A stretch of 64,000 bases of DNA from Macrostomum lignano (taxonomy: Eukaryota), in NCBI GenBank assembly GCA_002269645.1, contig NIVC01003555.1, positions 27,656-91,655 on the forward strand, read 5' to 3'. Under the pieces are notes generated by a model. The model was given only the letters and a program-made list of their open reading frames with translations, did not search any database and had not been told where the DNA came from. Made by a program: the position numbers and the translations under genes. Positions 34,253-56,924 of this stretch are shown piece by piece; positions within the stretch are counted from its first letter, which is position 1, and every line of letters starts with the position of its first letter.

Positions 34253-37200
34253 TCACTCAGCTGGGCTTAGGAGTCTCGTCATCGTAGCGGCCAGGCAAAA
34301 TGCCTGGAATTTAAAAACAAATCCGTGTTGTTAATTGGTTTGTGTAGTTAATCAGCCGTACAATTTTACTGATACAATTTATTCTTTGAAGCCAGAAAAC
34401 CTCCCTTTTCCTACCTTTATGCATGAGCCAAACACCGACCAGACTAAATTGGACCACAGGTTAAACCAGAGTCCATCGCTGATTTTGGTCAGACAGTCCT
34501 GCAAAATTGTCACAGGATTATACAGTCAGGGCTGTGTTGGAGTGTTGGAGCTGTGCAGTGAGGATCGGTCAGGGCTGTGTTGGAGTGTTGGAGCTGTGCA
34601 GCGAGGATCGGTCAGGGCTGTGTTGGAGCTGTGCAGCGAGGATCGGTCAGGGCTGTGTTGGCGTGTTGGAGCTGTGCAGTGAGGATCGGTCAGGACTGTG
34701 TTGGAGCTGTGCAGCGAGGATCGGTCAGGGCTGTGTTGGAGCTGTGCAGTGAGGATCGGTCAGGGCTGTGTTGGAGCTGTGCAGTGAGGATCGGTCAGGG
34801 CTGTGTTGGAGTGTTGGAGCTGTGCAGCGAGGATCGGTCAGGGCTGTGTTGGAGCTGTGCAGTGAGGATCGGTCAGGGCTGTGTTGGAGTGTTGGAGCTG
34901 TGCAGCGAGGATCGGTCAGGGCTGTGTTGGAGCTGTGCAGTGAGGATCGGTCAGGGCTGTGTTGGAGTGTTGGAGCTGTGCAGTGAGGATCGGTCAGGGC
35001 TGTGTTGGAGTGTTGGAGCTGTGCAGTGAGGCTTTTACGCATCTATGCATAGTAGAATTGCAGGCTACTCACCTTCTCAAAAACGTACCTGTTTATCCGA
35101 GCCTCCTTCATGTTCACAGCCACTCTGCACTTCTCCTTGCTAGTCATGCCCAGACAGCACGAGAGAGGCAGGGTGACGTTCTTTTTGCCAGCAGTGGAAT
35201 TTGCATTAGCCTGCTTGTACCACGGAGTCCGTAGGAACAGATTTTCTTCCGCATTGTCACTGAAGCCACAGCACTTTTCCTGTTTTGAGTATCGTTGATG
35301 AGGCCAATTTTGTCATGTAAACGCGTGACCCCTATTTCGATTCGCACACCTAACAAGTGGAAGTCAGGACACCCTCTGTGAACGCCCTTGCATGTGCTCA
35401 GAAGTCAATAAACTGGACAAAATTGCCTCACGGCTGTTTATGGGACAAGGTCGCCGAAGACGTTGCGCCAGGGGGCCCCCGTCCTCTGACGCATATTTTT
35501 AAAGGGATGTCAACTCAAGCACTGGAATGGAGCCAAAAGTTCGCTCCTCGCTAAACCGAGCGCATTCGATGACTTGTCAAACCAGTCAACCAGAATCACT
35601 GAGAGACATCAAATCGTGAACGTTTTGACTACTAGAGTGTAAATCATTCTCACCCTCTTCTGATAGTTCTCTATGGACCAGGTGAACTTCTTCGATGCAG
35701 AATCTTCCTTTCCGAACTGATTAACGATCTTCTCTTCAATGGCGTTTTTGTTGACTCTGGACAGGGACTTCGTGGCGGTGAATGCCACGACTAGCAGGAT
35801 GACGTCCATGACGATAGCTACGGCAAGGAAGCTGATGATCTGTAAGGATGGGACAGGCAGCTACAGATGGGACAGGCAGCTACAGATGGGACAGGGAGCT
35901 ACAGATGGGACAGGGAGCTACAGATGGGACAGGGAGCTACAGATGGGACAGGCAGCTACAGATGGGACAGGGGGATACAGATGGGACAGGGGGATACAGA
36001 TGGGACAGGCAGCTACAGATAGGACAGGCAGCTACAGATAGGACAGGCAGCTACAGATGGGACAGGGGGATACAGATTGGACAGGCAGCTACAGATGGGA
36101 CAGGGGGATACAGATGGGACAGGGTATACAGATGGGACAGGCAGCTACAGATGTGACAGGGAGCTACAGATGGGACAGGCAGCTACAGATGGGACAGGCA
36201 GCTACAGATGGGACAGGGAGCTACAGATGGGACAGGGAGCTACAGATGGGACAGGCAGCTACAGATGGGACAGGGGGATACAGATGGGACAGGGGGATAC
36301 AGATGGGACAGGGAGCTACAGATGGGACAGGCAGCTACAGAAAGGACAGGCAGCTACAGATGGGACAGGCAGCTACAGATGGGACAGGCAGCTACAGATG
36401 GGACAGGGAGCTACAGATGGGACAGGGAGCTACAGATGGGACAGGGAGCTACAGATGGGACAGGCAGCTACAGATGGGACAGGGGGATACAGATGGGACA
36501 GGGGGATACAGATGGGACAGGGAGCTACAGATGGGACAGGCAGCTACAGAAAGGACAGGCAGCTACAGATGGGACAGGCAGCTACAGATGGGACAGGCAG
36601 CTACAGATGGGACAGGGAGCTACAGATGGGACAGGGAGCTACAGATGGGACAGGGAGCTACAGATGGGACAGGCAGCTACAGATGGGACAGGGGGATACA
36701 GATGGGACAGGGGGATACAGATGGGACAGGGAGCTACAGATGGGACAGGCAGCTACAGATAGGACAGGCAGCTACAGATGGGACAGGGGGATACAGATTG
36801 GACAGGCAGCTACAGATGGGACAGGGGGATACAGATGGGACAGGGTATACAGATGGGACAGGCAGCTACAGATGTGACAGGCAGCTACAGATGGGACAGG
36901 CAGTTACAGATGGGACAGGGGATACAGATGGGAGCTAATGGTGACAACGGAGCTCATGATTTAATAGATTTTTGCAAAAAACAATCACGAGTCCTGTGAT
37001 TTTTTAGCCCTTAGCCACACCACAGCCTCATCAAGTACAAACTTCTGAAATAGCTCAACTCACCGCCATCAACATGGCGCGTCTGTTGAGCAGGACAGCA
37101 ACGAGGCCCAGAATCCCGATAAGCAGGCTAACCAGACCGAACACTATCGAGGTCCATCTGTCGTTCTCAAACGTGTCAACTTCATTGAATTCCTCTACTT

Positions 37201-37333
37201 TGTCAGATTCTTCAATTTTCGGTTTGATTATCAAGTCGATGGCGCCAAAGCCAATTCTGATGGATCCCCACAAGATGAAGGCGGTGTAACTCGCGAGAAG
37301 GAGGCGCCGTAAGACAATGCCTGAGAGAATCAT
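34253..37333 (-). CDS. Tetraspanin; exons 37333-37064, 35839-35654, 35279-35073, 34498-34415, 34303-34253
   Basis: Four TM segments; EC2 with EKCCG, PLSCC and a final DC before TM4 (LWFNLWSNLVWSVFGSCIK|AFCLAATM). All junctions are phase-0 GT-AG. Confidence 0.9.
34525..35030. repeat. 35/43-bp minisatellite (GGAGCTGTGCAGTGAGGATCGGTCAGGGCTGTGTT) in a tetraspanin intron
   Basis: About 13 copies. Confidence 0.95.
35848..36930. repeat. 19-bp minisatellite (ACAGATGGGACAGGCAGCT) in tetraspanin intron 1
   Basis: About 57 copies abutting the acceptor of exon 2. Confidence 0.97.
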
Positions 37334-37544
37334 GTTCCTTCTTTCAGTATAATAATTGTTCAAATTAGTAGTTCAACCATTTTGTATTTTGTTAAACCCT
37401 CCGAATCCACGACTTGTGCCAAAGGATTTGGCCTTCAGTGTGAAATTTTTATAGTCTATGTTTATAAGGTCACCGATTTGAATTGGACATCTTGTTTTTC
37501 GTTTGAGTTATTGCTGCTTCCGAATCAATCTGGCTATTGATTCA

Positions 37545-38335
37545 TGCCGTTCGCTGTTAATCCATGCCGTTCCCTGTTAATCCATGCCGTTCGCTGTTGA
37601 TTCATGCCGTTCCCTGTTAATCCATGCCGTTCGCTGTTGATTCATGTCGTTCCCTGTAAATCCATGCCGTTCCCTGTAAATCCATGCCGTTCCCTGTAAA
37701 TCCATGCCGTTCCCTGTAAATCCATGCCGTTCCCTGTTAATCCATGCCGTTCCCTGTTAATCCATGCCGTTCCCTGTTAATCCATGCCGTTCGCTGTTAA
37801 TCCATGCCGTTCGCTGTTGATCCATGCCGTTCCCTGTAAATCCATGCCGTTCGCTGTTGATTCATGCCGTTCCCTGTTAATCCATGCCGTTCGCTGTTGA
37901 TTCATGCCGTTCCCTGTTAATCCATGCCGTTCGCTGTTGATTCATGTCGTTCCCTGTTAATCCATGCCGTTCCCTGTAAATCCATGTCGTTCCCTGTTAA
38001 TCCATGCCGTTCCCTGTTAATCCATGCCGTTCCCTGTTAATCCATGCCGTTCCCTGTTAATCCATGCCGTTCGCTGTTAATCCATGCCGTTCGCTGTTGA
38101 TTCATGCCGTTCCCTGTTAATCCATGCCGTTCCCTGTTAATCCATGCCGTTCCCTGTTAATCCATGCCGTTCCCTGTTAATCCATGCCGTTCCCTGTTAA
38201 TCCATGCCGTTCGCTGTTGATTCATGCCGTTCCCTGTAAATCCATGCCGTTCCCTGTTAATCCATGTCGTTCCCTGTTGATTCATGCCGTTCCCTGTTAA
38301 TCCATGCCGTTCCCTGTTAATCCATGCCGTTCCCT
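37545..38335. repeat. 20-bp minisatellite (TTAATCCATGCCGTTCCCTG)
   Basis: About 39 copies, intergenic. Confidence 0.97.
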
Positions 38336-38348
38336 GCCATTCTATGCC

Positions 38349-38633
<285 letters not shown>

Positions 38634-39213
38634 ACCAGCGCCCTCCCAGTGTTGGAGGTGGCAACCAGTGGACTGAGCTAGCAGTTAAAACAAAACAGCT
38701 TTACTCGCTAGAGATCAATGCTTTTCTTTGCTGAGTTGGCAAGCTCGGCTGAGGGGGTGTGAGTCGTCGAAGAGCGTTTCGGGACGGTACGCACATTGAG
38801 CACAGGGACAATGGCTTCACTTCAGAATGTGAATCGATGCCTTAACGCGGAGGGTCCGACCTGGACGGAGCAGGAGGTGGCGCCACCACTTGCTGCTCAC
38901 AGCCCGGTTTACGAGCCTCAGTGCTACGCTGGGAAACACCTGCTCCAACTCTGCTAGCCACCAGGCCATTGCCCACGAAGTCACCCCAGCGAACTCTCTC
39001 CACCCCCCGCATGCGTTCGCGAGTCGCCACTGGAAGCAGAAGACGCTATACTGCTATAACTATGCTGCCGCCCCCAGTCCGCGAGCTTCTCCGACTTTCC
39101 AACACACGCCCAGTTCGAAAGCTGCTATAGAAAATATCGTAGCAGTTCGCATTTTGTCGTTGAACAATCAAGTACAACTGCAGGCTACTGTTTTGATTTG
39201 CTCAAGCAAGAGA

Positions 39214-42200
39214 ATGCTGCTGAAGGGCAGAGCTGCTGCGGTGAGCAGCTTGTTGCTGCTCGTTTTGCTTCTGGTTGGAACTCGCTGCCAAGCCAGACCA
39301 GTGCGAGGACCAGGTGAGTAGCACCTGATGTAGCAAACAGAGTAACAAATATTGTGCAAAACATCATAGCAACTACTTGATTGCTATGCACTTGAAGGAC
39401 TTCCTTTGAAACCCGCAACTTTACAGAGTCTGAAGAGCACGAGGAACTTTATCCAGAAGAGGAAGAAGAGGAGTTTTTTCCCGGTAAAAAAGGAGGAAGT
39501 GTCGTTTCAGAAGAATGTGAGTATAGTGTTTTGACCGCCCAATAAAAATGAAAACGTGTTTAATAACTGCATTGACAACTGCGTAATGCTTGAATCGCTT
39601 CAGTGCTGAAAAAGCTCCTGGCCGGCCGAGATGAAGTGTCGCGGTCGTCAAAGGACATCCAGAAAAGTAAATCTGTAAAAAAGATTTAGCACATTAAACT
39701 ATTCAATTATTCTACAAGCTTGAAGCACCATTTTCGATCTGCAGGAAGGCGCAAATCCGATGGCAAAAACCCGAAAGTTGTGCCGCCCGCGAGTAAAAAG
39801 CGTAAGCCACAAATTCTGCATGCATTCTGCATTTTCACTGTGAAATTCTTAGTAAAATTTGTTTTGTCTTTCAGTAGAGCGCAAAGTTCACAGCCTACCA
39901 AGGATTCACCCAAGCCGGAAAGTGGGCGGAAGCAGGAAGTCTGCGCCACCGGTGAGGAAAGGTAGGTCAGGAACTTTACCTGCATAATTTGGTTTTGCTC
40001 TTCTTGCCGTAAGACACGTTGGCGGAAAGAGTTCCCTACCAAAGAGTGAGTTTCAGATAACATCAGATAGCAAGCAAACATCAATCCAAATTGGCGGTTT
40101 CAGAGAAGAACCAAAAGAATCGTAGAATCGTTTTGGGAGGCTCCGAGAGCTCCCTGCCGCCTCAGTTCAGAAGTGAGTATCAGCGCCATGACTCACAATG
40201 GCGACATTTCTGACACACTAGCATGAAATTCATCAAGAAGTTTGACTGTTTCAGAGAAGAACAAGAAGAGGATGATTGTAGGCGGCTCTGAGAGCTCCCT
40301 GCCGCCTCAGTTTAGAAGTGAGTATCAGCGCCATGACTCACAATGGCGACATTTCTGACACACTAGCATGCAATTCATCAAGAAGTTTGACTGTTTCAGA
40401 GAAGAACAAGAAGAGGATGATTGTAGGCGGCTCCGAGAGCTCCCTGCCGCCTCAGTTTAGAAGTGAGTATCAGCGCCATGACTCACAATGGCGACATTTC
40501 TGACACACTTTAGCATGAAATTGATCAAGAAGTTTGACTGTTTCAGAGAAGAACAAGAAGAGGATGATTGTAGGCGGCTCCGAGAGCTCCCTGCCGTTTC
40601 AGTTCAGAAGTGAGTATCAGCGCCATGACTCACAATGGCGACATTTCTGACACACTAGCATGAAATTGATCAAGAAGTTTGACTGTTTCAGAGAAGAACA
40701 AGAAGAGGATGATTGTAGGCGCCTCCGAGAGCTCCCTACCGCCTCAGTTCAGAAGTGAGTATCAGCGCCATGACTCACAATGGCGACATTTCTGACACAC
40801 TTTAGCATGAAATTGATCAAGAAGTTTGACTGTTTCAGAGAAGAACAAGAAGAGGATGATTGTAGGCGGCTCCGAGAGCTCCCTGCCGCCTCAGTTTAGA
40901 AGTGAGTATCAGCGCCATGACTCACAATGGCGACATTTCTGACACACTTTAGCATGAAATTGATCAAGAAGTTTGACTGTTTCAGAGAAGAACAAGAAGA
41001 GGATGATTGTAGGCGGCTCCGAGAGCTCCCTGCCGCCTCAGTTCAGAAGTGAGTATCAGCGCCATGACTCACAATGGTGACATTTCTGACACACTAGCAT
41101 GAAATTCATCAAGAAGTTTGACTGTTTCAGAGAAGAACAAGAAGAGGATGATTGTAGGCGCCTCCGAGAGCTCCCTACCGCCTCAGTTCAGAAGTGAGTA
41201 TCAGCGCCATGACTCACAATGGCGACATTTCTGACACACTTTAGCATGAAATTGATCAAGAAGTTTGACTGTTTCAGAGAAGAACAAGAAGAGGATGATT
41301 GTAGGCGCCTCCGAGAGCTCCCTACCGCCTCAGTTCAGAAGTGAGTATCAGCGCCATGACTCACAATGGCGACATTTCTGACACACTAGCATGCAATTCA
41401 TCAAGAAGTTTGACTGTTTCAGAGAAGAACAAGAAGAGGATGATTGTAGGCGGCTCCGAGAGCTCCCTGCCGCCTCAGTTCAGAAGTGAGTATCAGCGCC
41501 ATGACTCACAATGGCGACATTTCTGACACACTTTAGCATGAAATTGATCAAGAAGTTTGACTGTTTCAGAGAAGAACAAGAAGAGGATGATTGTAGGCGG
41601 CTCCGAGAGCTCCCTGCCGCCTCAGTTTAGAAGTGAGTATCAGCGCCATGACTTCTAAGCGTTTAAGAGTTACGCACGTTTTTAGCACACTGGACAGGGA
41701 TTAAGGTAGTAGGCAGTAGCCAGGTGAGTGCGAAAAAAACTGGGAATCGACAAAAAGGACGCCGTAATCCCAGATGATGTCGAAGAAAAAAGGCAATAAA
41801 ATTAGTGAAACAAAATATGAAGCAAGGAGCGCTGATAGAGATTCAGTCGTCGAAGCTTGAGGCAGAAGTTTTGCCTTGACCTTACATCTCGAGACTCTGT
41901 TGTGCTCCAAAAAGTTTTCTTTGGTTTCTTGAACGGTGCATGAAGCGAGTGACTGGGTGAATTGCCATTTTCTGCAATTCATGCAGCAGTAAACCCTTAA
42001 GAGCGTTGAGGACATTTTTATTGATGATGGATCCGTGGTACGTGCGTTTATCTGCTTGAAAACTGGAAAAAGTGATGTATTTTAGCATCAGTCTCACTTT
42101 AAGCAGTCCAAAACAGTAGCCTAAGTTAGTGACTCAAGAAAGGACTCAAGATGGAACTCAGGACTCAAGGAAGGCAAGGCAAGACTCTCTAAGACAATGT

Positions 42201-45200
42201 CGAGAACCCCTGGGAGTGGTGGTAGTTCCACAAATTCAACCTGGATGAGATGTCTGGGGGCTTCTTGTCCACTCGTCCGATCAGTGATTGATTGGCCTTC
42301 GGTCTGGTCCGGAGCTTCACTTCGGGCTCCTTTATGTCGATGAAGTTGACATCCTTTATGATACCATAGCTCGAGAGTCATTATGAATCGATCAGCTGAT
42401 CAATACTGCAGGTTCTGTGTCAGAAGAGGAGCGATCCAGCAAACGCTTCCCTTTGTCCGGATACGCAAAGGCCTCCAAGACTCCCGGGTCCAGAGGTGAC
42501 AAGGACAAAGAGTTTAAAAGTGCGTCATAATTTGTCATACCCTGATAATTATTGTAGGACAGAATTTTCGTAGTTGAAAAAACTCTGAAGAAAAATTCGA
42601 AAAAATCGATAAGCGATTTGGAATCAAAGTGACGGGCACCGGGAGCTCCCCGACCGCCCCAGAATGGAAGTGAGTTGCGGTGGTCAATCTGTCAATCAAA
42701 GAAGACATTTCCAGTATCCTTAGGTCTCCAACTGCTCTGCCTCGTACTCCAGTTGATTTGAGATTCGAGTCGAACATTCGGCAGTTTAACCATTGTTAAC
42801 TTTCCAAAACCGTTGGAAAAGTCTGGCTTGGACTTTAGGAAACAGAAAGTTTTACTGTTTCTTTTAGCGACCCTCGAAAGGAAGGCAAGAATTTATACCG
42901 TGGACGACATAAATACCTGCATAAACGTGGGCTCACAAACACCCAGGGTGCGCAGGGGTCCTCAGACAGCGAAAAATGTGGTGGCCGCTTGCACAATCGA
43001 ATTCAGGGTCCTTAGTCCAAGTCTAAGGTGCTTCGTCTCTTCCAAAACAACCCAAAAAATTAAAATGCATTCAACTTTTCCAAGTGCACCCAGCTTACAC
43101 TGAAACAAATGCAACTAAAAACACTGCTACGCTTTAGAGAAGAACAAGAAGATCTCCAAGGCTCCTCAGGTGGGCGGCTCTGAGAGCTCCCTGCCGCCTC
43201 AGTTTAGAAGTGAGATCCCTTTAATACTGCATCAGTTGTTATGATTTCAAAGCCAATCAAGAGCATCTGTGAACAAATATGAGTCCGTTCATTCACTGCA
43301 GAGAAGCACCGCAAAGCCAAGAAGTCAGTTCCGAAGCCAGGCTCCTCGAAGGCCTCACTACCTCCCAAGAAACCCAAGAAGATTAAGAGTGAGTCTGTTT
43401 CTCCATTTTGCCGATTTTAAACCCTTGAATCAAGCAGTGTCTCCTGCGGTTGCAGAAATCGTCAGGCACCTTGGATTCAAAGCTGCTGAGCGCAAAAGTG
43501 AGTCTAAATTATTCTAATTTTCTTTCGTTTTCCGAAATGATCTCATGTTAGCATGCACAGGCGACGCCCCTTGCGCGTATGCGCTCGCAGAGCAGTCGAG
43601 AGGGGCAGGCAGCAGCAGCCTGAGGGGTCAGCGCAAGCGCCTACAAGTCAGCGATGAGGCAGTCAGTCAGAGCAGTCAGAGTGACAAAGCGGGTCTGGCC
43701 GCTCCACAGTCGCTCGGTCGGCTGGTGCAGCAGGGCCAGGGCCAGAAGGACGGCCTCACCGCGGCCAAGGGCCCGTAGGCAGTCGCCCAGCAGCATTTGA
43801 CGATACCGGCGCAGGGTAGCGCTCACCAGCGCGGGCCATCAGAGCGTTGGTCGACATGCGCTCCAGATAGTGCACGCCAAGCGCGTAACGCAGCAGCGAT
43901 CGGTAGAGGGAATCCAGGGCTCGCGCTCGCATCTGCGTCAGCGGCTCAGCCTCCATGCCGTACAGACGGATCGGCTCTACGACCGCGTGGAACAGGCACA
44001 CCTTCAGGTCGTCTCTGGCAGCTGAAGTGAAGACGTTCATGAAGAAGGGAGCGCGCGTCGCGCCAGGCCTGGTTCCTCCTGTCGGAGACAATGGCACAGG
44101 GTTCAGCACCAAGGCGTCGAGGTACCGGAAGTCCTCGCACGTGGCGGTGCCGTCTCCTTTGGGCAGCGTGAGATTTGGGGCGGTATTTGGGCCCTCGTGC
44201 AGCGCCTCCGTCTTGCGAGCATTCACCAGCAGCCCAAGACGGGCGCCCTCGTCGCCGAGTCTTGCGAGAGTGCGCTGGGCAGCGGCTGGGTCGCGACAGA
44301 GCAGCGCGATGTCGTCAGCATACGCGAGAGCGGGAAGCAAAAGAAATCGAAGCAAAACGAGAGGGCGTCTGGACCCTCGGTGTAGAACCAGTAGCTGTCA
44401 TCCTCGTGGAGGTACTGATGCAGCGCATAAGTCCAAAACCACGAGGAAGAGCAGCAGAACCAGCATGTCGCCCTGAAGGACGCCTGGGCTGATGCCGAAC
44501 TCTTCTTCTGGACCGCCGCCGCTTGACATGACAAAGGCACTGGAGTCAGGATAGAGATCTATCACTGCGTACGCGTAGCAGGTAGGAGATAGGAGCCACG
44601 CGATAGCTCTGTGGTGGATCCGCCCGGGCGGAAGCCATTTTGGAGGCTCAGCAGCAGTGGGTCGAGGCCGGGTTGGAGGCCGTTGCGCAGAATTGCGTTC
44701 AGCAGTTATCTCGGCTGGTGGAGGCGCCTTTCTTTGAGATGGAGACAATATTGGAGGTCCGACATTGCTGAGGAGCTAAGGCGGCCTCGTTGCCTTCAAG
44801 GCTGCAGTGCTTGTTCGGCAGGCTGGTGATGATCGGGGTGAGCTCAGGCAGCTTCAGGACCCTGGGAGGGATGGCGTCCACCCCAGCGGCGGCATCAGCT
44901 CGCATGGTCATCAGTGCTCGGCCAACCTCGCCTGCAGTGATGGGGCCGGTGTCGAAGGCGCCTGGTTGGACTGAAGCGAAGTCTGGGATTGGCAGGAGAG
45001 GCACAGTTGAAGCGGGCGCGCTGTAGTTGGTGGCCAGCCGGGCCTTCCGGTGCTCGGTGGAATCAGCACCGACGATGGTGTCGGGCTTCGGCTTCCTGCC
45101 GGTCAGCTGGTTGATGGCCCTTCTGGCAGCGCTATGGCGGCCGTTGTCAGTGCCGTTTGGGTTTTGCTCACAGCCACTTCGATGAAGACTTCAGTCCGCT

Positions 45201-48200
45201 GGGCATAGATGCGCTGCAGCTCGTCCGTGGCAGCACTGGCCTGGGCGCTGTCATGGCCGTGGAGGGCAGCAGTGCTCTCCTTCCCTTGGAGACGATGAGA
45301 CTGCGGTCCCACAGAGCCTTTGGATGGTTTGCCTGTCTCCGTGGGAGAAGCGCTGCAGCATCCTCGACGGCGTGATGGAAAGACTCGAAAGACTCGTTCA
45401 AAGAAATTTGGAAGCTTTTTGAGGCGCTTTCGCATGGTGCCATTGACAGCCATCAGATCTCTGGCCTGGAAAAAACTGGATAGGAAAGGTGAGTTGGCAT
45501 TGGGGATGCCACAGCTGTTCTTCACCAGGCGGCCGTCGGCTGGAAATTGCGAGTTGAAATCCCCTGCACCAAACTGTCACCGATGTTCTTGAACTGCCAG
45601 GATGGAGATGTTGAGGTCAGCGGCCAGCCTTGTCAGCTCCTGCAGTCTCCATGTCTGACTGAGAGCGCGGGCATTGAAGGTGGCGACCCGAAGCTGGTCT
45701 TGAAGATGCGGCCGACTTGTGTCCTTGTTGGCTCTGCTTGTCACTGATCTCAGCAATGTACAGTGTTGCATTTGACTGAAAACACCAATAATTGTACTCC
45801 TTGAGAATAACAAGAAGATCTCCAAGGCTCCTCAGGTGGGCGGCTCCGTGAGCTGCCTGGCGCCTCAGTTTAGAAGTATAAGATCTGTTTAATACTGCAT
45901 CAGTTATTGTGATTTCCAAGCCAATCAAGAGCATCTGTAAACAAATATGAGTCCGGTCATTCACTGCAGAGAAGAAGCGCAAAGTCAAGAAGGCAGTTCC
46001 GAAGCCAGGCTCCTCGAAGGCCTCACTACCTCCCAAGAAACCCAAGAAGATTAAGAGTGAGTCTGTTTCTCCATTTTGCCGATTTTAAACCCTTGAATCA
46101 AGCAGTGTCTCCTGCGGTTGCAGAAATCGTCAGGCACCTTGGAATCAAAGCTGCTGGGCAAAGTGAGTTTAGAGTATTCTAACTACATGTACCTTCGCTG
46201 TCACCTTCGATCTCGTAGTAATATTTCTACTTTGTAACAGAGAAGGAATATTGATTAAGGTGTTTGACTGTTTCAGAGAATAACAAGAAGATCGCCAAGG
46301 CTCCTCAGGTGATCGTGGGCGGCTCCGAGAGCTCCCTGGCGCCTCAGTTCAGAAGTGAGATCCCTTTATATTATTATATCAATTTTTTATTTCCAAGCCA
46401 ATCAAGAGCATCTGGGAACAAATACGAGTATGAGTCCGGTCATTCACTGCAGAGAAGAACCGCAAAGCCAAGAAGTCAGTTCCGAAGCCAGGCTCCTCGA
46501 ATGCCTCACTACCTCCCAGGAAACCCAAGAAGAATAAAAGTGAGTCTGTTTTCTGTTTTCGTTGGTGTCGACGAGAAGCGACGAGACACCCTATGCAGGT
46601 CCTTTCCAGGGTCCTTCCCTATGCAGGGCGCCCGACATGAGCCTCGAGTGAAGAGGGGGCCTTCTTATAATAAAGTGGCGCCCCTGATGAAAGATTCTGG
46701 CTGTGCGCCTTGGCACAAGTCTGACTGCTTCATCATGTTTATTGCCCCTCGATGCATTTTGACCCAAAGGAGATGTAGCTAGATACTTGAAGTGTTAAGA
46801 AAAGTTCCAGTGCTGTGTTGATACAAAAGGGAATAATAGTAAATACTTGAGCTAGCTCAATGTAATTTGGCTATAACTTCTTCATGAAATTACAGAGCAA
46901 CAAATACTGCTTTCATTTTTGCTGCCTCAACGAACACGGTGCTTTAAGTTGACAAAAACTCTCTCTTTTATACCCACAATCCTCTGGGATTCCAAGGGAG
47001 TGACCTTGGATGGGATTCTCTATGTTTGCATCGGTGTCACGTTAAAAGTTCAGTCTGACGGACAGAGAACCGCGCCGACTAAGCTCGGCCGTCCAAGTGA
47101 CTTTCGGCCTTCTTAATCCCACTAGTGAAAATCGTCATTTTTATCGGTTTTTTATTTTTCAGAAAAGCAAAAGAAGAGGAAAATTTTATTCAGACACGTT
47201 CGCACCGGTGGCGATGAAAGCTCGACTTCAACTGGCTCTGGAAGTGAGTGCATGCCATCTATGCTCGTATCCTCCCACATGCGATCACTCTTTTTCGAAA
47301 ATTTTATTTTTACGAATCGTTCGGTTTTTTAGCACCTCGAAAAGTAAATATTGGGAAGAAGAAAAGAATTCAAAAACACAAGGCCGGCGGAAGTGGCGTC
47401 AAAAAGACCGGTGGAAGTGGTGTCAAAAAGACCAGTGGAAGTGGCGTCAAAAAGGTTGGCGGAAGTGGCGTAAAAAATTCCAGTGGAAGTGGTGCCAAAA
47501 AGGCTGGCGGAAGTACCATCAAAAAGGTTGGCGGAAGTGGCGTCAAAAAGGCCGGCGGAAGTGGTGTCAAAAAGGCTGGCGGAAGTGGCGTCAAAACAGT
47601 TGGCGGAAGTGGCGTCAAAAAGGTTGGCGGAAGTGGCGTCAAAAAGGCCGGCGGAAGTGGTGTCAAAAAGGCTGGCGGAAGTGGCGTCAAAAAGGCCGGC
47701 GGAAGTGGTGTCAAAAAGGCTGGCGGAAGTGGCGTCAAAACAGTTGGCGGAAGTGGCGTCAAAAAGACCAGTGGAAGTGGCGTCAAAAAGGTTGGCGGAA
47801 GTGGCGTCAAAAAGGTTGGCGGAAGTGGCGTCAAAAAGGCCGGCGGAAGTGGTGTCAAAAAGGCTGGCGGAAGTGGCGTCAAAACAGTTGGCGGAAGTGG
47901 CGTCAAAAAGACCAGTGGAAGTGGCGTCAAAAAGGTTGGCGGAAGTGGCGTCAAAAAGGTTGGCGGAAGTGGCGTCAAAAAGGCCGCCGGAAGTGGCGTC
48001 AAAAAGGCCGGCGGAAGTGGCGTCAAAAAGGCCGCCGGAAGTGGCGTCAAAAAGGCCGGCAGAAGTGGCGTCAAAAAGGCCGCCGGAAGTGGCGTCAAAA
48101 AGGCCGGCGGAAGTGCCGTAAAAAATTCCAGTGGAAGTGGCGTCAAAAAGGCCGGCGGAAGTGGCGTCAAAAAGGCCGCCGGAAGTGGCGTTAAACCGGC

Positions 48201-48243
48201 CCCTCTGAAGGGACCCAGCAAGGGAAAGGCGAACCAGCCTTAA
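39214..48243 (+). CDS. Secreted Lys/Gly/Ser-rich repeat protein, paralog A, about 895 aa from 26 exons: 39214-39313, 39427-39516, 39604-39666, 39745-39801, 39875-39961, 40104-40172; ten 63-nt exons starting 40255, 40400, 40547, 40692, 40839, 40986, 41131, 41278, 41423, 41570; then 42412-42519, 43138-43209, 43302-43388, 43456-43497, 45970-46056, 46124-46162, 46277-46354, 46453-46539, 47163-47243, 47333-48243
   Basis: Signal peptide MLLKGRAAAVSSLLLLVLLLVGTRCQA. Every listed internal exon is AG/GT-bounded, phase 1-1, a multiple of 3 and stop-free. Summed length is 2688 nt (896 codons) ending on TAA. Region 41650-42400 and possible exon 47049-47096 are unresolved. Confidence 0.75.
40173..41652 (+). 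repeat. Tandem exon+intron array A: 10 x 145-147 bp
   Basis: Unit = TTTGACTGTTTCAG | 63-nt exon | GTGAGTATCAGCGCCATGACTCACAATGGCG... Confidence 0.95.
43546..45744 (-). mobile_element. Decayed non-LTR retrotransposon (APE + RT, RTE-like) in an intron of paralog A
   Basis: Fragmented frames: LRVATFNARALS...LAVQEHR (APE), GVLQGDML (RT motif 4), LAYADDIALL (YADD), LLVNARKTE, FRYL, LYGMEA. Candidate 8-bp TSD TGATCTCA at 43538-43545 and 45745-45752. Confidence 0.88.
47380..48195 (+). repeat. Coding 24-bp repeat, 34 x KK(A/V/T)(G/S)GSGV, in the terminal exon of paralog A
   Basis: No frame-breaking indels across 34 units; in frame with the spliced model. Confidence 0.85.
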
Positions 48244-49881
48244 GGTAGGTAGGCCGAAGGCATTACTTCCAAGGGTGTTGAACGCATTGTAAGCTGAGCA
48301 ATGGCAAGCTGATCCAATTCCTAATCTTCTCTTTCAGGTGCCGACTGTCGAAGTCAGAATTGCATTCTGCGAGGCTGATGATCCGAAACATGACCAGACA
48401 AAATATATTATTTTTTCTCGGTCCGGTCAAAGTGAACAAACATTTCCTTTCTCCCCGACAATTCACATCTAGTCGCTTATATTTTGAAAGTGCTGTCATC
48501 CTAACTACCATTACGATGTTGAGCTGAAGAAAATAAAAGCCAGAATTTAATAATGAATTGTTTTGATTCCTAAACAGGCTGTGGTTATTCAAGCAAGTTT
48601 CAAAGAACCTAAATGAATTATTTGCGTTATTTTAACTCTGGAAAATACTGAACGATGAAATTTCATAAATGGCAAATATTTGGTGAATCAATACTATGAC
48701 CGCCAGTCAGTCAACAGTGGTTCGTATTATTCTAACAAAGCAGCCCCCCCCCCCTCAGGCGCGTTCTCATTAGTCCCGAAGAAGTACACAAAGCACTTTA
48801 ATGCAGAGTATTTCAGAGCACAAAAACGCTCGAAAACAAACAAATTTAATTATTCTAACAAAATCTAAATTATCATTTGTTCAGAAAGAATTAGTTTTTT
48901 GTTATTAATAACAAAGCGTTAAATTAAAAAATTGAATTTATTAAATCATAAACTAGATTTACATATTTCTATGTTGAATACAATCCTCGATTACTTCGGA
49001 AAGACAGCTTCTGGTTGTGAGTTCGTATAGTTCCTTCAAAGTTTAAATTAACAAAGTTGTGTAAATACTGCTAGAAATTGTGTAACTTGTGCTTCTTAAC
49101 GTTAAAAATATGATAAACATTTCACCAGAAGGAAAATTAATATTTCTCTACATGCGCTTTTTGACTCCCCAGATTTCACTTTAGCCGTGTGGAACCCGCC
49201 TGAGATGCTGTCTTTGCCTCATCATCACTCGCTTGACTGGCTGGCAAAGTAGGACTTCAGTGTTGTCGTTGGAAGGTTCTGACATTTTTAAACTCAGAAC
49301 AAAAACTGAAGCAGCTAGAAGCAACTTTGGCGTCATCGTGACAGCAGAAGTGACAACGTATATAAAAAGCGATGGTTTATCCTTTGTCTCAACATTCGTG
49401 TGAGCATTGTGTAAATTGCATCAGAATATCCCAGTGCGTGACAACGATTGACTGTCACGCAATCGTTGTCACGTGCTGCGACCGCTGATTCTTTGCATTG
49501 TTATGCTGCTTGACGATTGTATTGTTCTGCATAAAAATGTGAATAATGATCGTCAAATTGCTAGACAATGGAAAACGCGCACATTAAGCGCAAAAACAAC
49601 GCAGTAGTCAGAGACTGTTCATCAGAAGTTGCTCATTAAAACTGAAACGTGCAATCCTTGAAGTGACAGTTCTCGAATAAGCGAACTGCGCATTCCGAAT
49701 GCATCCGACCTGCAGATTAATGGACATTGTAAAAATTCACAGTTTCTATATAGCCATTAGTATAGCCACTAATTTACTTACAATGTTGACATATTATACT
49801 TACCATGCTTCACCCGCATCTCCTGTGTCACCTCCACTGAAGCATACATGTAGGTCGCACGGGTCGGTCAGTCGTCGACAC

Positions 49882-52800
49882 TAGTTGTTTGACAAGACAA
49901 ATACAAATGTAGCTTTTACTCGCACTACCCGCTTTTCTGATTCTTGCAAGACGCAAACGAAATCAGCACTCATCACAGTGTTGTCTATGGTCAATCTAAG
50001 ACACATCTCACTCGTCTATGGGTAAAATAACTTGAAGCGTGATAAAAAAGTGTGGAATAATGACCGCTTCCAGCACGCTGAAATAATGGCCGCCAGACTA
50101 CGCTATGCCGAAATAATGGCCTCTGTGTGTCTTATAGACAATGGCGTTGCGTCGTATATGACAATCTACCATTGCTAAACACTTTTAGCAGTGTGACACC
50201 CATGAATTTGATGTTTAGCTGGCCACAGACATTGAAGTATTCAGACCAATTGTATCAGATTCGCCATAGACATTAAAGTGTTCAGATCAATTATCAGATT
50301 CACTCTCGCTCGTAGATTCCTACATCCATGCTCTAGCTGTTGTTATTTGTAGCTGGTACTTTATACTTTATCATCCGATAAACGTTGGATAACAAAAAAC
50401 ATGGCACCAATTTTACCTGTTATAAATTGGAAACGTCTGCCCGTGGACGCACTTGATGGAGTCAAGACTGACGAGCATCATGTGCATTACTGACCAAAAG
50501 ACCGAACGGACTGTTTGATGATACCTCTTAAGGAAAAGAGATCCTGCTGTTTGTCAAGCATCGACTGCTGTAAGCGCTGCCTTAGAGCGACCAATCGGGG
50601 AAGGTCTGTAAAAACTGTAGCCTTGAACAGCAGAGCAGTAGAAAAGAAAACAAGTGAGCAGACTCGGCGAAGTGACTCCGAGTCAAGACGTGCATCTTTC
50701 AGCAGTTAGGATAAACTGCAATCTTATTATTTTTAGGATGTACCTCCAGTGTTTTTCTCATAACTTTTGGATTTTTCAGCTATATCAGATAAATGGTATA
50801 TATTTCCCATTTATTTTGTTGTGTAGCGGGCAAAGGCTCGTGTGCCTTTGACCTTAGACAACACAATAAATCGGAAATATGGTATGTATCTCCCACTATA
50901 TGGCTAAAGAACGTAAAACTATAATTAAAAACGTACTTTAATATTTTTAAACTTAAATCAAGTCAAAGCTGTAGTCTATGGCTAAGCATTTAAACAAGGT
51001 ACAGGCTGAAACCACATAATGACTAAGAAAATAAAATAAGTAAGAGCAAGCGAAGAAGCGAATAATTATAAATATATAGATTTTCACGACATGACTAGCG
51101 AACGGTTTGAAAGTCTGACGGACGTTGAAGTAGACGCCTTGATTCAAAGTACTCTTCCGCCAAACACAATAAGAAAGTGTGAGTGGATGATCGCTACATT
51201 TCGTGAATGGCATCAGTTCAAGAAGAACCAGTGGGCTACATCAGGCGGACCATCTTTAGTGGTATTAAAGGAGATCGAGGAATTCACTAAGAACGATTTT
51301 AACTACTTGTTGAAGATGTTTATTCTAGAGGTGAGAACGAAATGGAATGAAAGATATTAGGCCGGCACATTAACCGGCAGAAGACGGATGGCACGATTTC
51401 GTGCCATAAAGTAATCATAGTTATTGACGGAACCGAATCTTAGTGTCTAGGGCAATCGTAGATTGCAGAATTTAATACCCCCGTTGCCGACTGACATGGC
51501 TCAAAAACGTGCCACGTCCGTTTTAGTTGGAAAGCTGCTTATTTTCCTATAGGTTAGGTGGCACTGTCTATGGCAATCATCACAGATCAAGAATAGGACC
51601 AGGACCAAATGCACACCTGCGTATATTAAAAACGAATATTAGTATTTGAAGTAGTTAGTACATTTGTATCTTATGCGTAGTATAGTATAACACGAACGTA
51701 GATCATGCTTTCTGTATTGATAACACAAACTAACGCAAAAAGCATTAGTTTTTAGGAAGACTTTAGGAAGGCTCCACGTCGCCTAGCATCACCGGTATCC
51801 TCAACCAATATTTTAATAGCCTGTCTCAAGAACTGCAGAAAAGTCTTGCTGCCACCTGCCTGTTGGTAGACAATCCAAGCGTTGCGAACGAGCAGCAGGA
51901 TCAGGTGAAACCCGAGTTTGTGGAACCACCGGATGCTTTTTCGATTGGCCAAGTACGGGTGTAGAGCGGAATCCATGTGGTCGACGCCACCCATGCTGTT
52001 AGAGTACGAGAGCACGCTAGTCGGTTTGGTGACGATCTGAACGCCGCCGCCACGACGAGTGCGCTGAACTTGCCTACATTCGGCCGATCCAGCGGTGTCC
52101 AATACGAAAACAGTCTTGACGCCACTCTGTTTCCTGTCAACAAACTTGCAGGCAAGCACATTTCCAGAGCGTGCAATGGCGGAAGAAGTTGGCTGCAGAT
52201 TTACAGCCTGCAGCAGGTTTGGGATGCCGCGGTTTTTGCGCACTGTGTCAGTGAGAAGAACATTCCGTTGCAGCAGCCACGTAGCAAGTCTGTGCGAAGT
52301 GAACCAACTGTCTGTGAAAATATGGTAGCCTAGGTAAAGCAAATTGCGGCACAACTCAGCCACAACTCTCTCACTCATGGACAAATTTTGACAGCCCAGT
52401 CCATCACCGAACAATTGGTTGGCTTCAGTTGATGTATGGATTTCAAAATTCCACAGGTAGGTCATGTCGGACTCACAAAGGCAGTACATCTTGATTCCGT
52501 ACTTACTGCTCTTCGTTGGGATGTACTGCTTGAACAACAGTCTTCCCTTGTACAGCACGAGACTTTCGTCAATCGAGAGCCGCTGACGAGGCATAGTTGT
52601 TGCTGCACAGCTGCTTAGCCTGTTGCAGAAAAGGCTGCGTCTTAGCCAAGGGACCCCCGTGCAGAGCCTCAGTGCAATCGTAAAAGCGAAAACAGGACAA
52701 GATCTGCTTGAACCTGTCTCTAGGAAGAGAACAAGGCTCAGCAAGAAATGCACAGTGATAAGCCGGATCTTGCGACCAATAGCTCGATATTTCAGGCTTC

Positions 52801-54411
52801 TTGTCCAGTCCCATCAGCAAAACAATTCCGATCAATTTTCTTACTTCATTAACCGTGCAGTCCTTCCAGTTCAGCACAAAATTTGGGACTGCTCCACCGT
52901 CAAAGTTATCCTCATAGGTCTTCCAAACCTTTGCGTTTGTCCAGTTCTTGATGTTCTCCATCAACCCGTCCGTCAAATACGAGGGCTGAGCAATAAGTTT
53001 CCGGATGTGCATAGTTGAGAGGCGGCTGACAAAATCTGACAAAATCAGATTCTGAAATCTGAAACTATTGCTCAGCCCTCGTACAGCTTGATAAAATCAC
53101 TCTCGTTTCCGTCGGCGATCTCAGGAAGCTGCAAATCGGGCCTGACTCCTGGTACTCCGAGGAACTCAGGCAGAGGTGCTGGCCTGGCATCAGCGCCATC
53201 TTCAACAAGATGCCACTGTTCTCCTACAAGTGACTCATCCTGCCCTTCTTCTTGGTCACTATGGGGATTTTCAACTTTGGATCCGTCAATTGACTCATCA
53301 TCAGCAGTGAACCAGCTCACTCCGAGTCTCCGTCAAAGTCTAACGCCATGTAATGATTCTCAGGAGCGAAATGCTTGGTGCTTTGGGTAGACAGAGGATC
53401 CAATTTTATAATAAGACTGTTTCTGTATTTCTGAAGCAGGTCCTTGGCAGAACTATTATGAGCACGACAGTGATTTCAATAAAAATCTATGGCCGAAAAT
53501 AGTGCCCTTTCCATATTTCCCTGTAAGGTTTTCTCATGAATGAAAGACATGCAGCCATAGCATTTGGTCCCCAGCCATAGACAAATTATCTTTTGGTTAA
53601 GCGGCTTTGTTACATACGGGTATACTTGTGGAGCTAGCTGCCGTCTGGAACGGGGGTAGAAATTCTGACACTCATGCACTTGGCACGAAATCGTGCCAGC
53701 CAGCCGTCGGCAAAGGGTGTGACGCATTTTTTGGTTCGTCGCGTAGAGGTTAAAGGACTTTTTTCAATGCTCCAATATCACATGCGAAACGTGGTCGGCA
53801 ACAATGGTGCTTATGGACTGATGTCGAGTTCACCGAAAGCAGAAAGGCTTTAGACTCAGCAATGAAATTCGCAGAAGGTCACGACGGAGTCAGTGGCTGA
53901 AACTAGGGTGCAGCGAGATGCGGATATTCCTACTAGAAAGAAGATGCGGATTAATGTCAACGGTGAGACCAACAGTGTAGTTATTAGTTTCGAGTAATTA
54001 TCCTATAATAACATTTAATATCATTCTTCAAATCAATAGTAACTTAACATTAACTTTTTTGTTTTGTAACTTTTTTGTAAGTAGACACATTCGGGACATG
54101 CCCCCAAATTTTTGGCGCGCGCTAAAATAAAAAGAAGTGACCCGGCGCTCGCCAGACAATCGTCGCTGATTATTTATCCATTATTCCACGCTTTTGCGGC
54201 CATTATTACACGCTTTTGTCACTGTCATTATTCCACGCTTTTATCATGCTTCAATTGGCTGTTTCAAGAGTTGTTTTACCCATAGACCACTGAGATGTGT
54301 CTCAGTTTGACCATAGACACACTGTGATGAGTGCTGATTTCGCTTGCGTCTTGCAAGAAATCAGAAAAGCGAATAGAGCGAGAAAAAGCTTTTTGACTTG
54401 TCAAACAACTA
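49882..54411 (+). mobile_element. TIR-bounded element carrying a decayed Crypton/DUF3504-type tyrosine-recombinase ORF (fragments 51091-51373 and 53754-about 53960)
   Basis: About 190-bp imperfect inverted repeats starting TAGTTGTTTGACAAG at 49882 and ending CTTGTCAAACAACTA at 54411. ORF fragments RFESLTDVEVDALIQSTLPPNTIRKCEWMIATFREW...FNYLLKMFILEVRTK and WTDVEFTESRKALDSAMK match the N-terminal pattern of DUF3504/Crypton proteins. Confidence 0.65.
51374..53749 (-). mobile_element. piggyBac (PGBD4-like) transposon, frameshifted
   Basis: TTAA at 51370-51373 and 53750-53753; inverted subterminal TGGCACGATTTCGTGCCA at 51389 and 53681. Transposase motifs RDRF, SIDES, KYGIK, FTDSWFTS, GTVRKNR-like (DTVRKNRG), MGGVD, RWFHKL across three broken frames. 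Confidence 0.92.
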
Positions 54412-55814: not shown

Positions 55815-56924
55815 CCAGAGAGTCTCGTGGGCATCCAGAAAGTCGTGCTTGATCCTCGTTGAATATTCTCCTATGAAGGGCCCTCGTCGGTCTTGTTCTT
55901 CTTCAACCCCTTCTTCTTCTTCTTCTTCAATCGTTTTGTCGCCTTGCGGCGTAGGTAACCCCTTCTTCTACATCACCGAGCTCTTCTTCGTCTTCTTCTC
56001 CAATCTCTTCGATAATCTCCTCTTCATCTTCTACATGTACCAAAGCGGCCATCTTTTTCTTATAAAATGTGCGAAGTAGATTTTTAAGTGTGCACTTTTC
56101 AAGTTACCTTTGGAAAAGTTAGGAGAGGGAGAGTGAGCCTGTGCTTGGTGTCTAAAGTGAATGTTGGCTTTTTAAATTGAATGTGCCAGCACCCCCATAG
56201 CACCCCCGTGCAGACGTTTTATTCCCCCCACAAATAGGGACATCAACTCGCCCCACTCGTATGGCTCTTCAGCTGAGGAAATAAGAAAGAAATCGGCTGG
56301 CTCGAGATCTCTCGAGTGCGGATCGTGAATTGACTCAAAGCGATATTGTAAAAGGATTGCTCGACACTAACCTGATAGGCAATTTCGCGTTCATCGCATT
56401 CAATGCGTTGCAGAAATCAATTAACGCATCCATTGGAAATGACGCAGGGCGCATCGTAGTTGAAATTTGGTTTTTTTAGAGTTTGGAGTTGACGTGGCAA
56501 TTCTCTCCTCCCATATTACTCCTCTCTCCAAGCCTTCCCGACATTGTTGCTTTACGAGCGTATAGCAAGGGTTGGCGTTCAATTGCCCAGACAGCAGACC
56601 ATGCAAAACAATGAAACCTTCGAGGTCATTCTGTCTGGACAGCCAGCTACGAGCCATTTGCCAAGCGACTCAAGATTATTGTCGATAAATTTATACCATG
56701 CGACGACATACTGAAGTTAGAAAATTTTAAAATTTAACGTTTCAGCGTCTACTTAAGGAGTCTAGAAGGGTAAATAATAAATAATAGCGTCTGCCCTCTG
56801 TCCGCCAGTCTGTTTGTGCTTCGCATTGGCAAAAATTACTGGAGAACATTCAGCAGTCTGCAACGCCCCCACATATCTCGACTGCTTCTTCCGATGTGAT
56901 GTAATCTGATGTGACTGGCTTTGA

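Follow-up and report, generated by a model that had tools for sequence, protein, structure and literature searches.

The defining features of micro-exon genes (MEGs) are a signal peptide and, behind it, a coding region composed mostly of very small symmetric exons; the skipping of these exons yields protein variants (PMC4350168, PMC10526429). In Schistosoma mansoni, MEG exons are 6–81 nt long, most of them 15 nt, the introns span 0.1–5 kb and the longest protein has 189 residues (PMC10526429). This organisation has been listed as a possible gain of the Neodermata, perhaps with a deeper 'turbellarian' history (PMC4398949). We analysed a 64,000-nt stretch of the genome of the flatworm Macrostomum lignano (assembly GCA_002269645.1, contig NIVC01003555.1, positions 27,656 to 91,655 of the forward strand), hereafter the window, to which all coordinates refer. 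At 39214–48243, a reading made from the letters of the sequence had proposed a secreted-protein gene (gene 1) built from short symmetric exons in a probably free-living animal, and had suggested that its layout would be a separate or ancestral version of the MEG-type diversification system. The host is indeed free-living and belongs to the phylum of the schistosomes.

Repeat proteins encoded by one exon per repeat are also known from other animals. In the spider Flag silk gene and the PEVK exon blocks of titin, each protein repeat corresponds to one exon, and units of exon plus intron have been tandemly duplicated and homogenised. Among adhesive proteins, barnacle cp19k is dominated by Gly, Ser, Val, Lys, Ala and Thr, and the sandcastle-worm proteins Pc-1, Pc-4 and Pc-5 contain Gly/Lys-rich short repeats. 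In tropoelastin, every splice junction is phase 1:1 in all species, and the removal of cassette exons keeps the frame (PMC12554196). In M. lignano itself, two thirds of the adhesive Mlig-ap1 consist of Lys/Arg/Gly-rich repeats; the protein is expressed in the adhesive gland and has a core of protein- and carbohydrate-binding domains (EGF is named; vWD, TSP-1, C-type lectin and others are figured) (PMC8621496).

Gene 1 is a secreted repeat-protein gene of class 1-1 exons built by duplication, found here only in M. lignano, and its kind is already known. Its architecture and duplication history are established with high confidence. The explanation that best covers the whole, and that we regard as reasonably probable, is that the gene encodes an M. 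lignano secreted polycationic repeat protein that has grown by the duplication of class 1-1 exons. The locus offers a clean, datable case of the growth of a secreted repeat gene, from a frame-neutral exon with its intron through higher-order blocks to a 147-bp array.

Gene model and exon architecture

The model of gene 1, rebuilt from the sequence, is that of a multi-exon eukaryotic gene on the forward strand, on which all features below lie unless stated otherwise. It runs from an ATG at 39214 to a TAA at 48241–48243 as a single open frame of 895 codons plus the stop codon spanning 26 exons, and it exactly reproduced the ATG-to-TAA coordinates, exon count and exon size range of the sequence-only reading. 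Exon 1 (39214–39313, GTGAGT donor) contains the ATG and the predicted signal peptide MLLKGRAAAVSSLLLLVLLLVGTRCQA, followed by RPVRGP; its length of 100 nt places the first intron in phase 1. MLLKGRAAAVSSLLLLVLLLVGTRCQA has the shape of a signal peptide, as judged by its basic n-region, its hydrophobic core of 16 residues, the small residues found at positions −3 and −1 and the helix that AlphaFold2 (AF2) modelled for the core.

All 24 internal exons behind the signal-peptide exon (90, 63, 57, 87, 69, ten of 63, 108, 72, 87, 42, 87, 39, 78, 87 and 81 nt) have lengths that are multiples of three (3n), are phase 1-1 and are bounded by GT and AG, in full agreement with the earlier call. Their lengths range from 39 to 108 nt with a median of 63 nt, and none is 36 nt or shorter. 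They account for 62% of the coding sequence (CDS), and a single 912-nt exon accounts for 34%. The 25 coding introns and the intron in the 3′ untranslated region (UTR) are all in phase 1; the coding introns have a median length of 84 nt, mostly 67–142 nt (21 of 25 at or below 142 nt), and the longest is 2472 nt. The splice sites are strong (GTGAGT donor in 19 of 26, TTTCAG acceptor in 14 of 25), and in 18 of 25 junctions the split codon is one for Lys, divided as A/AG or A/AA. The ten exons of the tandem array described below are open in phase 1 in every case, in phase 2 in six of the ten and in phase 0 in none. As a matter of arithmetic only, any subset of the internal exons could be skipped without loss of frame, as the earlier reading had pointed out.

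Four unique phase 1-1 exons follow exon 1, at 39427–39516 (90 nt, including an acidic EEEEEE stretch), 39604–39666 (63 nt), 39745–39801 (57 nt) and 39875–39961 (87 nt), and their junctions are also present in the UniProt models P0002, P0006 and P0007. Exon 6 (40104–40172, 69 nt, KNQKNRRIVLGGSESSLPPQFR) heads the repeat-exon family as a diverged member. Farther downstream, exon 17 (42412–42519, 108 nt, SVSEEERSSKRFPLSGYAKASKTPGSRGDKDKEFK) is unique and phase 1-1, and exon 26 (47163–47243, 81 nt, KQKKRKILFRHVRTGGDESSTSTGSG) is likewise phase 1-1, with junctions that agree with those of the UniProt model P0012. The last coding exon (47333–48244, 912 nt, phase 1-1) contains 34 copies of a 24-nt repeat (47380–48195) encoding (GGSGVKKA)n. 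The TAA finishes 1 nt ahead of a GTAGGT donor, and a 92-nt intron separates it from a terminal exon (48338 to ca. 48555), which is 3′ UTR in this model and carries AATAAA at 48532.

Read in phase 1, the terminal exon encodes GADCRSQNCILRG followed by a stop codon; this peptide contains two Cys and was modelled as a hairpin. P0012 treats the terminal exon as coding, and other alleles or isoforms may carry GADCRSQNCILRG as their C-terminus. Each 24-nt repeat at 47380–48195 also holds GGA A/GT GGC, that is, a GT at phase 1, and P0012 joins such a site to the terminal exon. Use of this repeat-internal donor, if genuine, would allow a variable number of GGSGVKKA repeats to be lost in frame.

Duplication history of the exons

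Most internal exons derive from a single ancestral exon, whose pattern is KK.KK..VGGSESSLPP..(K/R), and have since diverged. Peptide alignment linked the 87-nt exon 5, the family of 69-, 63-, 72- and 78-nt exons, the 87-nt KPGSSKASLPP family and the 81-nt exon. The local peptide alignments between exon families had z values of 3.7–15.7 against shuffled sequences, and a DNA alignment that included three relic exons was concordant. The 24 exons fall into approximately nine sequence families, of which approximately six are detectably inter-related. Because the 24 exons are not independent events, the chance of obtaining 3n lengths has to be computed for approximately five to nine lineages; considering length only, it lies between (1/3)^5 and (1/3)^9, a value that is beyond chance and far less extreme than that for 24 lineages.

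The exon amplification noted in the earlier reading is evident in the common ancestral exon, three duplicated blocks and a tandem array. The array (40139–41653) comprises 10.4 copies of a 145–147-bp unit (63-nt exon plus 82–84-nt intron) with 96% matches, as determined with Tandem Repeats Finder (TRF). Its exons start at 40255, 40400, 40547, 40692, 40839, 40986, 41131, 41278, 41423 and 41570, and each encodes KNKKRMIVGGSESSLPPQFR. The length of the amplified unit is close to that of one nucleosome core, and TRF also gave higher-order periods of 292 and 439 bp (40139–41653 and 59979–64000). Block A (43138–43497) consists of the exons 43138–43209 (72 nt), 43302–43388 (87 nt) and 43456–43497 (42 nt) with their introns. 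Block B (45970–46162, or 45816–46162 when its relic first exon is included) contains the exons 45970–46056 (87 nt) and 46124–46162 (39 nt) and is 95%–96% identical to block A, introns included. Block C (46277–46539) contains the exons 46277–46354 (78 nt) and 46453–46539 (87 nt), with junctions that agree with P0012 and P0001. The three blocks share 93%–96% identity throughout exons and introns, indicating that the introns were duplicated together with the exons.

Three splice-bounded candidates lie outside the model; each breaks the frame, and in the DNA alignment each proved to be a decayed copy of the repeat exon. The first relic (40014–40045, 32 nt) is a truncated copy that the database models also skip. 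The second (42574–42669, 96 nt) was tried as an exon and rejected, since a 1-nt insertion produces an in-frame TGA. The third (45816–45876) is the relic first exon of block B, in which the acceptor AG has changed to TG and the donor GTGAG to GTATA (GTATAA). The symmetry of all exons accordingly describes the working exons, and dead exons are present at the locus as well. The 2472-nt intron harbours a GC-rich insert (GC 0.58; ca. 43540–45765, boundaries approximate, reverse strand) with degenerate reverse-transcriptase-like open reading frames (ORFs), a retroelement remnant; an ORF of the insert matched RVT_1 with an E-value of 8e-6 and 26 bits, under the Pfam cut-off.

These data show a simple route of growth. 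An ancestral phase 1-1 exon of approximately 60–90 nt, together with its intron, was duplicated repeatedly behind the phase-1 intron that follows the signal-peptide exon. Copying or loss without damage to the frame is possible only for frame-neutral units (3n, same phase), and for this reason the uniform 1-1 phase would be both the precondition and the footprint of growth by duplication. Uniform phase need not be a purpose-built diversification device, and duplication is the simpler explanation.

A tandem paralogue and concerted evolution

A second gene of the same type (gene 2) starts at 59358 and runs past the window end at 64000. It comprises a signal-peptide exon (59358–59457), two 5′ exons that have diverged and, from 59979 onwards, 27 or more units of 147 bp, and it lacks counterparts of gene 1 exons 4–5. 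Both genes are preceded by a near-identical core-promoter-like block (39044–39096 in gene 1; CTATACTGCTATAA...CAGTCCGCGAGCTTCTCCGA) of approximately 50 nt, which contains CTATAA and lies approximately 150 nt 5′ of the ATG; farther upstream, the two genes could not be aligned. Large minisatellites are located directly 5′ of both promoters (35847–38633 and 56903–59092), with 57 copies of a 19-nt unit, 40 copies of a 20-nt unit and 71 copies of ATCT ahead of gene 1 and 99 copies of a 21-nt unit ahead of gene 2.

Exon 1 is 92% identical between the two genes, with zero indels. Elsewhere, exon indels between gene 1 and gene 2 measure 3, 12, 18 and 9 nt, whereas intron indels measure 22, 4, 1, 1 and 4 nt; among blocks A, B and C, exon indels measure 6 and 3 nt, and the intron indels across the comparisons of paralogous copies also include one size of 2 nt. 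Exons are more similar between the genes than their adjacent introns (92% versus 85%, 77% versus 63% and 72% versus 61% identity). The restriction of exon indels to 3n lengths and the higher conservation of exons support a coding constraint.

The arrays present a different picture. The units are on average 97.0% identical within the array of gene 1, 96.3% within that of gene 2 and 96.4% between the two, and polymorphic sites are common to both arrays, whereas the unique 5′ regions of the two genes are just 61%–92% identical. As the arrays are as alike between genes as within them while the 5′ parts have diverged, the pattern is that of concerted evolution. The two arrays, approximately 20 kb apart, probably exchange sequence by unequal crossing-over or gene conversion, or may have been renewed recently. 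In its youngest layer, the locus carries a 147-bp array of exon plus intron with minisatellite-like behaviour, probably homogenised within and between paralogues, and protein length may shift in steps of 21 residues as the copy number changes (10 copies for gene 1, at least 27 for gene 2). Both of the exon variants that reach high frequency in the arrays are synonymous. Among the gene 2 units, that at 63262 has a GTGAAGT donor, and those at 60332 and 63410 have lost 3 nt in frame (60 nt).

Comparison with known systems

Gene 1 shares with MEGs its occurrence in the flatworm phylum and its plan of a signal-peptide exon followed by symmetric 3n exons (PMC4350168, PMC10526429). In addition, the products of both are secreted (by prediction here), taxon-restricted and domainless, and both form tandem gene copies that diverge fast. 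The differences are considerable. Exons of the M. lignano gene do not qualify as micro-exons, measuring 39–108 nt with a median of 63 nt (6–81 nt and mostly 15 nt in MEGs), its introns are mostly below 150 nt (0.1–5 kb) and its protein has 895 residues (at most 189). Moreover, one 912-nt exon amounts to a third of the CDS, and most of the other exons are recent duplicates of each other. No similarity to any MEG family was found in protein searches or in Pfam. Hence the MEG-like plan proposed earlier stands with respect to the signal peptide and the symmetric 3n exons and does not extend to exon size, intron size, protein size or sequence similarity. The M. lignano gene should not be filed as a MEG, and homology to MEGs is, as things stand, unlikely.

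The further proposal that the layout represents a version of a MEG-type diversification system could not be upheld, because an all-1:1 layout has long been known from tropoelastin (PMC12554196) and is not diagnostic of such a system, and duplication explains it more simply. Like tropoelastin, the M. lignano product is a Gly/Val/Ala/Lys-rich, secreted and largely disordered polymer (the last two by prediction), encoded by many short exons with all junctions 1:1. Unlike tropoelastin, to which it has no homology, the protein is more basic and Ser-rich, and its exons are young tandem duplicates with conserved introns. Hydrophobic VPG-type exons alternating with KA/KP cross-linking exons are absent from the M. 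lignano protein, and no search returned an elastin match. The design resembles elastin as much as it resembles schistosome MEGs. A signal peptide combined with uniformly symmetric exons can arise by plain duplication, which calls for caution in reading such a layout as a diversification system. The locus is also a useful outgroup for asking whether schistosome MEGs have roots in free-living flatworms (PMC4398949).

The mode of amplification resembles that of the Flag and PEVK arrays, in that conservation in the M. lignano arrays is as high in introns as in exons; the systems are unrelated in taxon, sequence and unit size, the M. lignano unit measuring 147 bp and its two arrays being co-homogenised across 20 kb. 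With Mlig-ap1, the product shares the species, predicted secretion and long low-complexity cationic repeats rich in Gly and Lys (and Arg), but the folded domains of Mlig-ap1 are absent from it according to Pfam, and no sequence match was found. With cp19k and the Pc adhesives, it shares a composition in which Gly, Ser, Val, Lys, Ala and Thr account for 94% of the residues of the C-terminal exon, a compositional lead only; there is no homology, and the M. lignano protein has essentially zero Tyr/DOPA (dihydroxyphenylalanine) potential.

Database models and homologue searches

Protein searches matched only UniProt entries of M. lignano, plus one motif in a dinoflagellate. P0007 (A0A1I8JIW0) is identical to exons 1–8 including the junctions, P0012 (A0A1I8ITX3) joins exons 20-21-24-25-26-27 as in the rebuilt model and lacks exons 22–23, and P0002, P0005 and P0006 are allelic versions. 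The secreted-protein gene of the earlier reading looks real, with its signal-peptide exon, its 895-codon frame and UniProt models sharing its junctions. The models differ in exon content: P0005 (A0A1I8JK32) and P0006 (A0A1I8JLP8) are otherwise identical, and the 69-nt exon 6 is present only in P0006, a difference that could reflect either exon skipping or a copy-number difference among near-identical genomic copies. P0003 skips exon 4 and takes a different acceptor. Such differences may represent different genomic copies or alleles, or ab initio predictions. There is no encoding contig on record for P0001. The names given to the UniProt fragments (KI67, Bindin, H15 domain, BLVR domain and SET binding protein) were dismissed as artefacts of Lys-rich low complexity, and the protein contains no Pfam domain.

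No NCBI-annotated protein for the locus was found in the protein searches. The Mlig_3_7 annotation dropped transcripts overlapping repeat annotations (PMC5730564), and this filter probably explains the absence. Public protein sets seem to lack the full gene; only fragments from an older assembly were found in them, probably for the same reason (PMC5730564). Abundant gland products of a similar type may thus be systematically under-annotated in M. lignano.

A word-indexed search covering 5.8 billion clusters detected no relatives outside M. lignano, and when the UniProt fragment P0002 was scanned exhaustively against 1.84 billion representatives, the sole finding beyond M. lignano was one short-motif match. 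This match is to Symbiodinium natans CAE7229251.1 (P0008/P0009; locus 2603–3538), which repeats M[VS]IGGD[ED]SSLPPEYR and agrees with MIVGGSESSLPPQFR at 10 of 15 positions (E-value 4e-6). It was rejected as a relative since the remainder of the protein is unrelated, leaving convergence or chance; the likeness may reflect a common short linear motif or a coincidence. The peptide strings of the unit were not found in the searchable literature, and the literature on M. lignano neuropeptides and prohormones and on Lys-rich gland proteins contained nothing attributable to this locus.

Predicted protein and putative function

The product of 895 residues is composed of 21% Lys, 15.5% Gly, 13% Ser and 6% Arg, with almost no Tyr or Cys, and the calculated isoelectric point of the mature chain is approximately 11.6. 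Its layout consists of the signal peptide, an acidic stretch and then basic modules. Single-sequence AF2 models of two fragments had low scores (predicted local distance difference test, pLDDT, 56–57; predicted template modelling score, pTM, 0.13–0.21), and structure was confined to the core helix of the signal peptide, one short helix, the C-terminal hairpin and little else. On this weak evidence, the protein is predicted to be largely disordered.

The product is predicted to be secreted. After removal of the signal peptide, it would be released from a gland or epithelial cell, and the Gly/Ser/Val/Lys/Ala repeat at its C-terminus, together with the Lys-rich modules, would provide its charge. 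Such a polyvalent, cationic and flexible polymer would bind or condense polyanionic partners or surfaces and might serve for cohesion, adhesion or coating or as part of a matrix. This suggestion of a cationic extracellular polymer derives from composition only and is tentative, being possible without reaching an even chance in our judgement. Were the product secreted for adhesion, cohesion or reproduction, its cationic modules, being variable in copy number, would be relevant to bioadhesion or sexual selection in Macrostomum.

Alternative explanations

Several observations weigh against a functional secreted repeat protein. As fragments that are at least partly ab initio, the UniProt models corroborate splice sites and do not prove transcription; sequence derived from retroelements is found in P0001 and P0004, and P0011 has a frameshift. 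Transcription, exon usage and secretion are predictions. The near lack of Tyr and Cys and the absence of all the folded domains of known flatworm adhesives leave the functional guess to composition. In the array units, exonic columns vary slightly more than intronic ones (0.92 versus 0.67 minor-allele cells per column), non-synonymous variants occur at approximately the intron rate (0.18 versus 0.14 events per site), and comparisons of exon with intron and of synonymous with non-synonymous variation inside the arrays gave no signal of purifying selection, because the arrays are too young and too homogenised. In gene 2, the array exons starting at 62679, 62971 and 63701 measure 62, 62 and 61 nt owing to frame-breaking deletions of 1–2 nt, which are either assembly indel errors or real decay, and exon 2 remains in frame only via a weaker donor. 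The lack of better exon conservation in the arrays and the frameshifted copies in gene 2, together with the three relic exons, the retroelement insert and the fact that no NCBI-annotated protein was found, would suit a decaying or non-functional locus, either a former gene overrun by minisatellites or a satellite mimicking exons, in which the open frame is a by-product of young repeats; 15% of the genome consists of tandem and simple repeats (PMC5730564), which are also abundant in the window. Against such a locus stand an 895-codon frame across 26 consensus-bounded exons, including at least five unrelated unique exons, the confinement of exon indels to 3n lengths and the better conservation of exons than of flanking introns between paralogues and blocks, and the conserved core-promoter block and signal peptide. 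The commonest exon variants in the arrays are, moreover, synonymous, and the annotation gap is probably accounted for by the published repeat filter. We therefore consider decay highly improbable.

The growth of a secreted protein gene by exon duplication also has to be weighed against two readings in which the modules themselves are put to use. In a MEG-like system, homologous or analogous to that of schistosomes, cassette exons would be skipped in many combinations to give a pool of secreted variants. The uniformly 3n, 1-1 exons behind a signal peptide, the flatworm host, the suggested 'turbellarian' roots of MEGs (PMC4398949), the fast divergence of the paralogues with no relatives detected elsewhere, and the exon-wise variation among models (P0005 versus P0006, the skipping of exon 4 in P0003, and P0012 without exons 22–23) are all compatible with it. 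The variation among models, however, may equally stem from alleles or homeologues of a hidden polyploid or from ab initio prediction, the array splice sites are uniformly strong (GTGAGT/TTTCAG) and do not suggest regulated skipping, and skipping identical exons would alter the length of the product and not its sequence. With exon, intron and protein sizes that differ from the S. mansoni values (PMC10526429), the 912-nt exon and the lack of MEG similarity, we regard a MEG-like system as quite unlikely. A narrower form, in which the two-gene cluster is a free-living counterpart of the MEG strategy whose 1-1 cassettes are amplified in the genome and skipped in transcripts, appears very unlikely; if true, the length and module content of the secreted protein would vary among individuals and cells, and MEG-type organisation, or its independent invention, would exist in Macrostomorpha outside the parasitic Neodermata. 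The other reading is a polyprotein precursor, in which convertases would cut between R and M in R-K-K-N-K-K-R/M and free a peptide of approximately 14–15 residues, MIVGGSESSLPPQF(R), with the acidic stretch as the pro-region. The succession of signal peptide, acidic spacer (EEHEELYPEEEEEEFF) and many identical units flanked by KKNKKR, with KKNKKR ahead of each MIVGGSESSLPPQFR unit, would fit such a precursor, gene 2 being essentially signal peptide, spacer and array; 11 peptide copies are predicted from gene 1 and at least 27 from gene 2. The similar M[VS]IGGD[ED]SSLPPEYR repeats in the unrelated Symbiodinium protein also hint that the core may be a functional short motif. Yet Lys and Arg amount to 27% and are spread over the whole protein, so that cleavage at dibasic sites would break up the entire chain, (GGSGVKKA)n included. 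A C-terminal Gly for amidation is lacking, and the peptide matched no known flatworm peptide family, its strings being likewise absent from the searchable literature. A single peptide copy per exon is, furthermore, unusual for peptide precursors. A precursor is thus unlikely, and a secreted polycationic repeat protein grown by exon duplication remains the explanation that we prefer.

Genomic surroundings

Elsewhere in the window, the content is as expected of a metazoan chromosome, with a FAT-like cadherin, a Delta/Serrate-like EGF gene, a piggyBac-type transposase and many minisatellites. At 16190–26635 on the forward strand, long ORFs encode multiple cadherin repeats (Pfam Cadherin, E-value 1e-54 for 17684–19555) and match FAT4-like N-terminal domains, so that the region 5′ of the locus looks like a large FAT-like or protocadherin gene. 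On the reverse strand, an ORF at 31101–32171 matches EGF and EGF_CA at scores that exceed the Pfam cut-offs and DSL at one that does not, making it a candidate exon of a Delta/Serrate-type Notch ligand. A piggyBac-type transposase remnant (DDE_Tnp_1_7, E-value 7e-36) extends over two ORFs at 51752–53042, also on the reverse strand. Many arrays with periods of 10–40 nt are distributed across the whole window.

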